Assembly (NCBI GenBank): GCA_028826165.1
Contig: JAPDFW010000086.1
Span: forward strand, 62,001-126,000
Length of the DNA stretch: 64,000 nucleotides
Source of the DNA: Anaeramoeba ignava BMAN
Lineage: Eukaryota; Protista; Anaeramoebae
Reading direction: 5' to 3'
The translations under genes and the position numbers were made by a program. Below, one piece after another: positions 4,792 to 9,493 of the stretch. Positions within the stretch are counted from its first letter, which is position 1; each line of letters begins with the position of its first letter. A model generated the notes under the pieces. The model saw only the letters and a list, made by a program, of their open reading frames with translations. It searched no databases and was not told the origin of the DNA.

Positions 4792-5973
4792 ATGGCGTTA
4801 ATTATGAAATTAGTTGTACTTGGAGGAGGAGGAGTTGGAAAAAGTGCATTAACAATACAATTCCTTCAAAAACAATTTTTAGAAACGTAATTATAATATT
4901 TTTTTTATTTTAAAAAATTTTTTTTATATTTAATCTCCCTTTTTTATTAATTTTTTCTCCTTTTTTTTCTTTTTCTCAAATAAATTAATAACTGAAAAAT
5001 AAATTAAAAATCAAAAATTAAATTGAAAATTAAATTGAAAATTAAAAATCGAAAAATAACGTAAATTGATTTTGATCTAATTTAAATTTTTCTTTGTTTG
5101 TTTTTTTTTTGATCATAATTAGATATGATCCAACAATTGAAGAAAGTTATAGAAAACAAATGGTAATTGATAATGATAGTTATGTTCTTGATATTTTAGA
5201 TACTGCTGGACAAGAAGAATATGCACCAATGAGAGAAAAATATATGGCATCAGGTCATGGATTTTTATTTGTTTTTTCAATTACATCTCGAATTTCTTTT
5301 GAATATTTGAATGAACTTTATCAAACAGTAAATAATTCAATAATTTAAAAAATAATTCAATAATTTATAAACATGATTTAAAAATGATTTAAAAATATTT
5401 TATAAACATGATTTAAAAATGATTTAAAAATATTTTATAAACATGAAATGAATAAAATGAATAAAAATAATTCAAAAACATGAAATGAATAAAATGAATA
5501 AAATTAATTTAAAAATGATTTAAAAATAATTTATAAACATGAAATTAATAAAATGAATGAAATGAATAAAAATAATTAAAAAATAATTTATAAACATGAA
5601 ATTAATAAAATGAATAAAAATGAAATAAAAATGAATAAAAATGAATAAAAATGAATAAAATTAATTTAAATAAAAAAGTTATGAATAAAAATTAATTAAA
5701 AAGAATTTCCTATTGTTGTCGAATAAAAATAAAATTAATAAAATTAATAAAAATGAATAAAATGAATGAAAATAAAAAAAAATAATTTATCAACTTTTAA
5801 ATGCCCATAAAATGAAGCATCAGCAAAAACAATTAAAAATGTTGAAAAATAATTTATAAAAATAAAATTAAGTTAAAATGAATAAAAAATTGTTGTTGGC
5901 GGTAATTCAGGAAAAAAGAGAAGAAAAAGATTGTAAAATAAAAATCGTTGGAAATAAATTTACGTTCTTTTAA
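4792..5973 (+). CDS. Ras-family small GTPase; exons 4792-4886 and 5123-5327 intact, 3' exon (about 5690-5973) disrupted
   Basis: [16 protein letters not shown] (G1), YDPTIEESY (effector), DTAGQEEY (G3). Only fragments KEFPIVV and [11 protein letters not shown] survive downstream, with stops. Confidence 0.8.
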
Positions 5974-6140
5974 TACTTTTTCATTCTTTTTTTCTTTCAA
6001 CATTTTCAAAAACAAGAAGATTATTTTCTAAAAAGGATTCTTTTTCTTTTCGTAATTTTTATTTTCTTTCCAAATTGAAATTTGTTTTGTCTTTTTTTTT
6101 TCTCTCTTTCTTTTCCTTCAATAAAAATCAAAAAAAAATT

Positions 6141-6170
6141 CATCATTTTTCATTTTTCATTTTTCATTTT
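6141..6170 (+). promoter_or_regulatory. Tandem TCATTTT initiator-like array with no downstream protein-coding gene
   Basis: The same sense-strand motif array precedes most ATGs in the window; here no credible ORF follows. Confidence 0.4.
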
Positions 6171-6980
6171 TAAAAAAAGAATTGAAAAAAAAAATTTTTT
6201 TTCTCAAGAAATTTATCAAAAATTTCATACTCGGATAGCTTTTCTCTAAACCCTTATTGGGATGATTTCCACTAAAGTTCGATTCTTGCCAGAAGATAAT
6301 ATCGAAATTTTGTTATTTTCAATAAGCTCATTCACATTCCATTTGCAAATCAACATTTTGTTTTGATTTCTTTGCTTTTTGCATTTCGGGAATTTAAAGA
6401 AAAGTTCATTAAATTGAAAATAATATGAAAAAAAAAATTTCTTGAAGGACTAGAAAATGTTATTTCATTCCCAATGGAATCATTCCCCAAGAAGTTAGAA
6501 AATCCAATATATCTTCCAAAAAAAATTGTTAAATTTTCTTCTTGCTTCATTTTTTCATCTTCTTTTTGATAATCTAATTTATAGGAAATTCAATCTTTGG
6601 AAAAGTTTGTGAAACGTTTACACATTCGATCAAAATAAATAGATAGCAATTGAATATTCGTTAAAATATTTGAATTGAAATGATTTAAAAAAAATGAAAA
6701 TAAATTTTTTCAATTCAAAATTTAAATTTTGTTTGTTAAAAAATTTACCGTTAATTCAATAAAAAATTAAAATGAAAAATGTGTTCTTTCCATTTTTAAT
6801 CGTAAAGAAGAGAATAATAACCATTTTCTGGGAGAATTTGTTCCAGAACATTCTGTAATGGATAATATTCATGGAAACCAAACAAAAAGACCTTCTAATT
6901 CCCCAAAAACTCAAATATTGTTTCATTCAAAAAATTTGAGCTATTCAAAAAAGAAAAAAGCAAAATTTTTTTTTGTTTGA
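6170..6980 (+). ncRNA. Candidate structured non-coding RNA, possibly telomerase RNA (template-like CTAAACCCT at 6246-6254)
   Basis: Non-repetitive sequence of coding-like complexity without a convincing ORF. Hand-found complementarities: 6204-6214/6435-6445, 6223-6229/6424-6430, 6313-6323/6413-6423, a pseudoknot-compatible segment at 6336-6404, and 6514-6539/6583-6602. Boundaries are approximate. Confidence 0.35.
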
Positions 6981-7003
6981 TTTTCATTGTTTTTTTGATT
7001 GTT

Positions 7004-9493
7004 TTAAAGAAAAGCAATTTTCTTAGAAAAAAAGAAAAATTCTTTGATTGCTTTTGAAAGTTCTTTTTCAGATTTAAAATTAATTTCTTTCGCTTTTAGA
7101 ATTGTTCCTTTTTTGAATTTGAATGAATTTAATTGATTCATATTTTTTGAAATGATTTCCAAAACAATTTTTTTCTCAATAATTGTTTGTTTTGTTTGTT
7201 TTTTTGTTTCCTGTAGTTTTTGAATTAGAAACTTTAAAACTTTCAAAATAAAATTTAAATCATTTGAAACAGAATCTTGAGTTTTGATGAAAATGGAGTG
7301 ATGTAGATTAAGGAAAAGCTTGAAACCTTTGAGGAGATAATAAAGAAATAATTTGAAAAAATCATCTTCTTTTGTTCTTGAAAAATTTTGTTTTTATTTT
7401 GGAAAAATAGGATAATAATTTCGAAAATTTGAGCAATAATTGGTAAATATAAAGGATTTTGATTTTGAATTTGAATTTGATTTTTTTGTGATTCCATTAA
7501 TTTTGTTTGTAAATTGAAATTATGAGATAAAAAACGAATTAAAAGTCTGAATAATTTTTCCCAATCTTTTTCAAGTTTGATATTTTGTTGAACTAATTGA
7601 ATTATAATTCTTTTGATGATTTCAAGAATTTGGAAAGTAATTTGTGAATTTGTTGATTCTAAATCATTAACTGCCAAAAATTGGATTAATAAATCAAAAA
7701 TGATTGAGATGAACAATTCATTATCTTTTTCTTTTATTTGTTCTCGATACTTTTTGGCAAATGTAGAGTGTGTTTGAATTTGTGTTGTTTTCTTGTATAA
7801 AATATCAATAAAGCTTGAATTTTTTGTGAGTGAATCTATTATGCATATTAGGGATTTATCAACAGAAGAATTTCTTGGAAAATTTGGGATATTCCAAAAA
7901 ATGTTTGAAGTTAAAATAAGGAAGTGATCCAAAATATGAATTTGATTTTGATTTTGATTTTGATTTTGATTTTGATTTTGATTTTGATTTTGATTTTGAT
8001 TTTGATTTTGATTTTGATTTTGATTTTGATTTTGATTTTGATTTTGATTTTGATTTTGATTTTCTTTTTCATTTTCATTTTGATTTTCATTTTGATTTTT
8101 GATTTTGATTTTGATTTTGATTTTGATTTTCATTTTGATTTTCAATTTGATTTTGATTTTGATTTTGATTTTGATTTTCATTTTGATTTTCAATTTGATT
8201 TTCATTTAAATTTTCATTTAAATTTTCTTTTTCATTTTGATTTAAATTTTCTTTTAAATTTTCTTTTAAATTTTCTTTTAAATTTTGATTTTCATTTTGA
8301 TTTAAATTTTCTTTTAAATTTTCTTTTAAATTTTCTTTTAAATTTTCTTTTAAATTTTGATTTTCATTTTGATTTTCATTTTCATTTTGATTTTCATTTT
8401 GATTTTGATTTTCATTTTGATTTTCATTTTGATTTTCATTTTGATTTTCATTTAAATTTTCATTTAAATTTTCTTTTAAATTTTCTTTAATTTCTAAATA
8501 CTTCACTAATGACTTGATTCCAAATTCTTCAATAATCCTTAAAAATTCCCATAAATTTAAGAAAAATCCTTCAATATATTGATTCAATTTAGATTCTTCA
8601 TCAATCCATGAAAATTTGCCTTCTTTTTTTGAATCTTGATTTTCTTGATCTTTTGATTTGTTGAAAAAAATTGAAGAAAAACTCAAGATTGCAGAAGCAA
8701 AGAAAAACGGATTAAAAGAAGAATTATCTTGCTCAAAAATTTGAAGCAAATTGATATTAAAGCCTGAAATATAATGGTCAATAATTTCCAATAATTTTAA
8801 TGTGAAATCATCTTCATTTTTATCAATCATATCAATACAATTATCAACTAAAATATTTTTTTCTTGTGATTTTTGAGAAGATGATAAAAAAACAACCAAA
8901 ATAACAAATCCATGCAAATGAATAATAGGATGAATTATTGGATCTTGATCCGAAATTATATGATTAAGAATATAAAGAATATTTCTTGAATTATTGGCAA
9001 AAATGAGATTGAATTGTTTGTCTTGAAGAAATAATTCATTTCCATTAATTATTAATGATTCAAATAAACCAAGTAAAGCAATTTTGAACTCCAAATTTTT
9101 CAAGTTGATTTTTTTGATTTCTTGGAATAAACTTGTTAAATATTCTTCAATTTTTTGTTCTTCACAAATTAAATTAACAACTTCTTTTTGGAAATTTTTT
9201 GGTTTTCTTCTTGAAAAGGCTCTAAAAAATGTTGAAATGAATTGAATTGAATGAGTGATTAAAAATTCGTTTTCTGAATTTAAATTATTAAGTGCTTTTT
9301 GAAATAATTGACGAATTGGATTTTTTAAATTGTTTAAAATTTCTGTTTGCATTTCAATTATTTTTGTGTAAATGTATTTTTTATTGATTTTGATAAGAAA
9401 GAATTGATGCAATTCATTTTCTGGGATTTGCCTTTTTGGATGTAAAAATGTATCAAATAAAACAATTGATTTTTCTTGGTGTTTCTTACTCAT
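7004..9493 (-). CDS. ARMH3: ARMH3/C10orf76-like (DUF1741) armadillo-like protein; intronless, with two 1-nt frameshifts in A-runs (about 8095 and 7371)
   Basis: N-terminal QEKSIVLFDTFL...FFLIKINKKYI and C-terminal VLEIISKNMNQL resemble recalled C10orf76 motifs. The three ORFs join after single-base homopolymer corrections; there is an internal EN/QN tract. Confidence 0.6.

Follow-up and report, generated by a model that had tools for sequence, protein, structure and literature searches.

The interval between a Ras-family GTPase gene (plus strand) and an ARMH3-family gene (minus strand) of Anaeramoeba ignava raises the question of what kind of gene, if any, begins at a TCATTTT array, runs into complex sequence with no convincing open reading frame and carries close to its start the telomerase template word CTAAACCCT. 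The first-pass annotation of the window, i.e. the whole stretch of 64,000 nucleotides analysed here, had proposed a telomerase RNA. We find that the locus probably encodes an ORF-less RNA transcribed by RNA polymerase II (Pol II), and that the telomerase RNA of A. ignava, an anaerobic, free-living metamonad (PMC11550330), is the best single reading of it, unproven and held with a confidence slightly short of even. The non-coding Pol II RNA draws support from the promoter, the lack of coding signal, an RNA-like contig, the presence of TERT and the placement of other RNAs elsewhere in the genome, while the weak structure speaks against the telomerase assignment.

All genome counts refer to the A. 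ignava assembly of 42.8 Mb in 147 contigs, which is strongly AT-rich and of which contig C87 harbors the window; two proteins encoded in the window are recorded under A. ignava. Domain searches of the spliced genes (Ras, TERT) were performed piece by piece. The Ras gene (4792-5950) matches PF00071 in its exon 2, while its last exon (ca. 5680-5950) is interrupted by stops and frame shifts and lacks supporting reads at 5790-5861, probably as a result of unpolished assembly. The ARMH3 gene (PF08427) extends from 9493 to 7004 on the minus strand, of which the annotated protein of 334 residues is a mere fragment: run X1, probably a DNA run (see below), has an additional T after 7369 with respect to the assembly, and once this is restored the frame is open to the real stop at 7004. 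Hence, the intergenic gap actually spans ca. 5950-7003, and the ORF-less gap previously drawn up to 6980 is smaller than it appears, although devoid of a convincing ORF as claimed. Concerning ARMH3 itself, four transitions within 19 nt (7813-7831) are common to both RNA-like runs and occur in neither DNA contig; they most likely represent a second allele, with editing as the alternative. Run X2 carries another difference at 7756. At the start of contig C87 (L018:1-150) there is a minus-strand sequence that, judged by eye, resembles a 5S rRNA gene. The candidate region is single copy, a genome-wide paralog search having yielded nothing beyond low-complexity matches to 6640-6790.

The longest ORFs in the region comprise 66 codons on the minus strand (6550-6350) and 34 codons on the plus strand (from 6262). 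A frameshift error hiding a longer frame was rejected, since a single X1 contig covers 6149-7022 with 0 differences to the assembly; the lack of an ORF is thus real, as the annotation had stated. A spliced plus-strand gene was rejected as well, there being no GTAA donor in 6171-6980. No frame is positive over 6200-6500 in the codon model, and a three-periodic model with frameshifts allowed, applied to 6180-6460, gives a z value of 0.4 on one strand and 0.1 on the other, similar to U1 and U2, whereas real exons reach 4-7. A mild coding signal (z 3.2) appears on the minus strand over 6460-6640. The coding score of the 66-codon antisense ORF is -3.5, corresponding to the 5th percentile of real coding sequence (95% of real CDS pieces score higher), and 24% of wrong-frame open stretches reach it; the ORF has no Pfam match and no Atlas match above 0.79, is absent from the protein collection and has two short ATGs upstream. 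GC content is 26-30% over 6204-6640, a level equal to that of coding DNA, compared with 9-19% in the flanks and 32-42% in U1, U2 and U6; both complexity and GC are far above those of the non-coding DNA of this genome.

The array that precedes the region consists of four tandem TCATTTT units on the plus strand (6143-6171), an initiator-type Pol II start mark at which the RNA is predicted to begin. Its likeness to the arrays found before protein genes, pointed out in the first-pass annotation, is borne out: such arrays mark protein-gene starts, and resemble the Trichomonas initiator. An ATG follows within 60 nt in 25 of the 31 TCATTTT arrays of the window and the other loci inspected, including the one of TERT, and 5 of the 6 ATG-less arrays open into filler of 4-11% GC. 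The candidate is the sole array of the 31 that is followed by complex sequence with no ATG within 60 nt; the first ATG, at 6262, opens the above mentioned frame of 34 codons.

The snRNA genes use a different element. U1, U2 (three genes) and U6 share CCATAATT, located 54-66 nt before the RNA start and between a T-run and an A-run (contigs C13, C57, C67, C70 and C115), and a motif built from U2 and U6 recovered U1 blind. CCATAATT is the A. ignava snRNA promoter element, common to Pol II and Pol III snRNAs. Near the candidate it is absent, the best match having 2 mismatches, so that no counterpart of the upstream sequence element (USE) of Diaphoretickes-type Pol III promoters is seen there; the RNase MRP gene shows no match to the tested form of CCATAATT either, and its absence at the candidate is therefore not decisive. 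Taken together, the initiator array and the missing CCATAATT imply that the candidate, if transcribed from here, is an mRNA-type Pol II RNA and not a type-3-promoter RNA; type-3 promoters are used by plant and ciliate telomerase RNAs (PMC8287931). Elsewhere, AAACCCT shows no enrichment downstream of initiator arrays. A role of CTAAACCCT as a general promoter box was considered and rejected, as it shows no enrichment in the 265 kb sampled.

Five sequencing runs cover the stretch, four from one sample and one (X5) from another. For the former sample, the deposited study lists two Illumina runs of DNA and two runs of RNA, the latter being a stranded, poly(A)-selected library and a Terminator-treated, poly(A)-depleted one. 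X1 and X2 hold 351 and 401 million letters and yield contigs of up to 170 kb with even depth, while X3 and X4 hold 29 and 24 million letters, with X3 contigs of up to 13.6 kb at depths ranging from 4 to 650. Judging from run sizes and from this contig and depth pattern, X1 and X2 are probably the DNA runs, and X3 and X4 the RNA-seq runs. The contigs placed on the locus are those of X1, X2, X3 and X5. X3 contains a contig of 435 nt and depth 18.7 at 6182-6614, whose 5' bound lies 11 nt beyond the TCATTTT array; it should be noted that assembled contigs carry neither strand, true ends nor level, and that holes between them prove nothing. This contig is four times deeper than its right-hand neighbours and has no counterpart to the left. 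X3 lists no piece over 6006-6077 or 6615-6730; the next one starts at 6731, with the pieces toward ARMH3 at depth 4-6 and the ARMH3 coding part at 36. The first AATAAA after the contig end, on the plus strand at 6634-6639, may serve as a 3' processing signal. At face value, the X3 contig suggests that the RNA likely spans from ca. 6165 to 6615-6660, i.e. ca. 450-490 nt. In run X5, also RNA-like, no contig covers 6222-6365, and 6664-6898 is covered by a thin one. We consider 6664-7003 more likely to be the ARMH3 3' UTR than part of the candidate RNA. The 3' bound of 6980 proposed in the first-pass annotation is thus too far, as the X3 contig stops at 6614 and 6615-6980 is probably separate, and the stem at 6827-6849 that had been counted as part of the RNA falls within the likely 3' UTR.

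DNA depth deserves a separate comment. In both DNA runs the ARMH3 contigs are about twice as deep as the one at 6149-7022 (76-84 vs 38 and 21 vs 11), depth in assembled contigs not being equivalent to copy number. No second allele over 6149-7022 was found in the DNA runs at 88% likeness. A duplicated ARMH3 behind the depth step was rejected, the assembly containing no second copy. If the segment were specific to one haplotype, this would be a point against an essential RNA.

The candidate template, CTAAACCCT at 6246-6254 on the plus strand, amounts to 1.3 units of TTTAGGG, that is one 7-nt repeat and 2 alignment bases, the same arrangement of seven bases plus two for alignment that makes up the Arabidopsis template word (PMC12133305). 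It is found once in the window, against 0.10 expected, and 30 times in the genome: 19 sites lie inside open frames of at least 85 codons, 5 inside an AT-rich repeat and 6 elsewhere. Only the candidate, out of these 30, has an initiator array before it and complex ORF-less sequence 3' of it. With 30 sites in 86 Mb (both strands), any one start would have the 9-mer within some 120 nt by accident in ca. 1 of 20,000 cases. The AT-rich repeat is itself ORF-less, several kb long and ca. 95% identical between copies; it carries CTAAACCCTTATT behind TCATTTT words (contigs C19, C31, C32 and C146), resides on contigs rich in another G-run repeat and has no Rfam match.

As regards the telomere repeat, the assembly contains no TTTAGGG array, no two consecutive units and no array with 2 mismatches. 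Other GGG- or TAGG-type telomeric tracts, TTAGGG included, are not found in it either, and none of 60 contig ends carries a telomeric repeat. Since TTAGGG tracts are equally absent and no telomere is assembled, the missing TTTAGGG does not by itself count against the template. The only telomere-like array seen consists of ca. 5 TTTTAGG units inside a contig (C64:1165606-1165642), one base off TTTAGGG. The literature searched reports no telomere repeat for Anaeramoeba; known metamonad repeats are TTAGGG, TAGGG and TATATGGTCT. TTAGGG is regarded as ancestral in excavates, hence TTTAGGG in Anaeramoeba would be a switch. Elsewhere in the genome there are ca. 45 TTAGGG-type template words, known by position only.

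The protein partner is present. TERT occupies a single intact locus on contig C58 near 551 kb, displaying an N-terminal domain, the RNA-binding domain, the T motif and RT motifs A-E; the gene has introns and an initiator array in front. The T motif sets the A. ignava TERT apart from that of Giardia. With an intact TERT, a telomerase RNA should exist in this genome.

Could the candidate be some other housekeeping RNA? As the first-pass annotation had suggested, telomerase, RNase P/MRP and U3 families were checked against Rfam, and no model matches the candidate: no family is found even at E 10 on 561 nt, and no telomerase family lies above its gathering threshold. U1, U2, U6, MRP (C2:716055-716341), SRP (C76:163152-163401) and, probably, U3 (a weak match, C93:904848-905084) were located by model match on other contigs, and were hence rejected as identities of the candidate. 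RF00009 finds no nuclear RNase P RNA genome-wide, in a search of limited power, and inspection by eye reveals no CR-I/CR-V pair in the candidate. Two side observations concern the snRNAs: U2 comes in two types, one on C13 (L131:1501-1713) and the other as a near-identical pair on C57 and C67 (L132:1501-1627), with a different 5' end and a longer 3' part, and on C70 a second copy of the U6 3' half plus flank follows the gene in tandem.

Turning to structure, the words and helix arms on which the proposed core had been built are all in place. The outer enclosing helix (11 bp) pairs 6204-6214 with 6435-6445, with a predicted pair probability of 0.92 when 6195-6460 is folded and 0.64 for 6165-6660, and a second one (7 bp, probability 0.55) pairs TTTCATA at 6223-6229 with TATGAAA at 6424-6430. 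The 11-bp helix has a p value of 0.013-0.04 in matched windows, and the nested 11+7 arrangement one of 0.003, a post hoc statistic; the summed nested perfect helices give p values of 0.002-0.02 when set against genomic windows of like GC and of 0.02-0.10 when set against dinucleotide shuffles, with bounds picked afterwards. The predicted core-enclosing helices are therefore modestly in excess of chance (p 0.003-0.04), in agreement with the original proposal. A third perfect 11-bp helix (6313-6323 with 6413-6423), which is non-standard in a telomerase core, would surround the segment of the possible pseudoknot. All three long helices have their 3' arms side by side within 6413-6445 (33 nt, 29 paired positions). 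Directly abutting the 5' edge of the 9-mer, 6238-6245 is predicted to pair with 6398-6405 (8 bp, probability 0.79), a possible template-boundary helix missed in the first-pass annotation; it uses the 3' strand of the proposed pseudoknot helix P3 and so competes with it. Apart from this helix, only a 3-bp hairpin is predicted 5' of the template. On its 3' side, a small hairpin (TGGGA/TTCCA, 6258-6271) forms in the prediction with the template held open, followed by a hairpin at 6273-6312 (core 6278-6306, probability 0.66-0.68).

The pseudoknot fares worse. A possible H-type pseudoknot at 6344-6402 combines 6344-6349 with 6378-6383 and 6367-6373 with 6396-6402 (P3), leaving a U-rich loop 1 of 17 nt, a linker of 4 nt and a loop 3 of 12 nt, and competes with other helices. 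The longer version drawn originally loses its outer pairing, ATTCC/GGAAT, which would leave just 2 nt to reach the 3' strand of P3 and is incompatible with P3, unlike the inner 6 bp. Under an untailored score the pseudoknot does not reach significance (p 0.08-0.23); it looks rare (0.3-0.7%) when thresholds are fitted to it. In the 3' part, the stem 6514-6539/6583-6602 suggested earlier is outside the predicted ensemble; the likeliest stem-loop there is 6491-6548, with a small hairpin predicted at 6468-6479. This part shows no recognisable CR4/5, H/ACA or canonical Sm signature, and no C/D boxes in 6441-6700. Folding energies against shuffles, put forward in the annotation as a check, come out at shuffle level (z -0.35 for 6195-6455 and 0.02 for 6170-6980), whereas the U1 and U2 of A. 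ignava reach -3.9 and -5.1, respectively, and no local window in 6200-6450 falls below -2.2. The free fold buries the template against 6388-6396, from where opening costs 1.6 kcal/mol, while the originally proposed model minus its pseudoknot pairs costs 4.6 kcal/mol. A moss telomerase RNA is known to adopt both a closed and an open state of its template, a resemblance that does not amount to a test.

Comparison between species provides covariation evidence neither way, because no related locus was found. Synteny searches with the ARMH3 and Gaa1 homologs returned distant eukaryotes only, with other neighbours, and no A. flamelloides locus; metagenome scans with an ARMH3 peptide and a 20-nt core word were empty.

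The reading as a telomerase RNA has to be weighed against three others. The promoter type, the non-coding signal and the RNA contig would suit any ORF-less Pol II RNA of the plus strand, such as RNase P RNA, a snoRNA precursor or a loosely structured long non-coding RNA, with the 9-mer present by chance. That RF00009 leaves RNase P RNA unplaced, and that the 9-mer followed by TATT also occurs after TCATTTT words in an unrelated five-copy repeat, adds to this possibility. We nevertheless regard it as unlikely, given the empty Rfam search, the missing CR-I/CR-V words together with a z of -0.35 that is poor for RNase P, the lack of C/D boxes in the 3' part, the fact that AAACCCT does not otherwise accumulate after initiator arrays, and the low odds of a chance 9-mer so near the start. 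Rather improbable is a small or decayed protein gene, be it the 66-codon minus ORF, whose mRNA the X3 contig would then be, contigs being strandless, or a pseudogene in which the array has survived and the ATG has been lost. The poor score of that ORF, its lack of matches in Pfam, Atlas and the protein collection, the two short ATGs ahead of it, the absence of signal in any frame over 6180-6460 and the missing paralog in the genome argue against such a gene, even though the GC content is that of coding DNA, the minus strand shows its mild signal over 6460-6640, initiator-like words near 6690 and 6770 are oriented toward the minus strand, and a dispensable segment specific to one haplotype would fit the halved DNA depth.

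Least credible, with a low probability, is plain intergenic DNA crossed by a stray promoter-associated or read-through transcript (from the Ras 3' end or as ARMH3 3' UTR) with no function of its own. Folding at shuffle level, the low-depth contigs over 6664-6971 that look like ARMH3 3' UTR and the X5 gap over 6222-6365 would fit it; yet the sequence is too complex and too GC-rich for the non-coding DNA of this genome, the X3 contig stands out in depth from its right-hand neighbours with nothing to the left, and the nested helices are above background. In rough odds based on assumed numbers, the chance for the telomerase RNA of this organism to combine this template word with an initiator promoter and with a long closing helix comes to ca. 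0.007, compared with ca. 0.001-0.005 for an accidental word within 120 nt plus a helix among some hundreds of ORF-less initiator loci, which favours the telomerase RNA by ca. 2 to 7:1 before the negative results are counted. Our confidence in the telomerase RNA falls to the level given at the outset, slightly below even, once the folding energy at shuffle level, the non-significant pseudoknot, the reduced DNA depth and the strandless contigs are taken into account.

If the candidate is the telomerase RNA, a Pol II gene would start in the TCATTTT array near 6165 and end near 6615-6660, and the helices 6204/6445 and 6223/6430 would close a core of 240 nt. TERT would read CUAAACCCU, using its two 3' bases to align the chromosome end, and would add one TTTAGGG per cycle; copying would be stopped by the helix abutting the template 5' edge (6238/6405 or the weak local hairpin). 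The U-rich/A-rich segment 6344-6402 would act as the pseudoknot, while 6446-6615 would hold a second TERT-binding stem. On this tentative reading, the locus would be the first telomerase RNA from Metamonada, an initiator-driven Pol II RNA of ca. 450 nt whose TTTAGGG template is of the plant type and whose core is re-wired so that the pseudoknot sits inside its own helix, and would imply an independent switch to TTTAGGG telomeres in Anaeramoeba.

The literature searched, whose coverage is incomplete, yielded no metamonad telomerase RNA: a 2025 review of telomerase RNA evolution leaves metamonads unmentioned, and a Giardia review names TERT and accessory proteins and no RNA gene. If true, the assignment would thus provide a new telomerase RNA from a major lineage lacking one, in a strain for which public nanopore and stranded RNA reads exist, and would seed a model for those of Trichomonas and Giardia. 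As one of the proposed roots of the eukaryotes lies close to metamonads, it would also bear on the polymerase, Pol II or Pol III, that transcribed the ancestral telomerase RNA, and on the antiquity of the individual core elements.

How does the candidate compare with known systems? RNase P and MRP RNAs (RF00009, RF00030) are likewise mid-sized and universal, but MRP is placed on contig C2, and the candidate matches neither model and lacks the CR-I/CR-V words. Trypanosome telomerase RNA, a trans-spliced Pol II transcript with C/D boxes and no clear pseudoknot, is the nearest excavate example; it shares Pol II with the candidate, which differs in its template and has no C or D box words in its 3' part. 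The telomerase RNAs of Arabidopsis and other Diaphoretickes (PMC12133305, PMC8287931) have the same 9-nt template word, CUAAACCCU, and the candidate is alike in its predicted nested closing helices around the template, its possible 3' pseudoknot segment and its similar core size. They are, however, Pol III RNAs with a USE, in contrast to the mRNA-type initiator of the candidate, which lacks the snRNA element of its genome; the candidate pseudoknot segment lies inside an extra 11-bp helix, G-rich 5' and C-rich closing regions are absent and there is no sequence or model match. Among Pol II telomerase RNAs, the human one measures 451 nt and yeast TLC1 1.3 kb (PMC12133305). The candidate shows no recognisable H/ACA, CR4/5, canonical Sm site or Rfam telomerase match, and yet resembles the vertebrate and fungal RNAs in its Pol II-type promoter and a length near 450 nt. 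Finally, yeast telomerase RNAs have a helix that borders the template on its 5' side and an arm that separates the template from the pseudoknot, and the predicted fold of the candidate recalls both.
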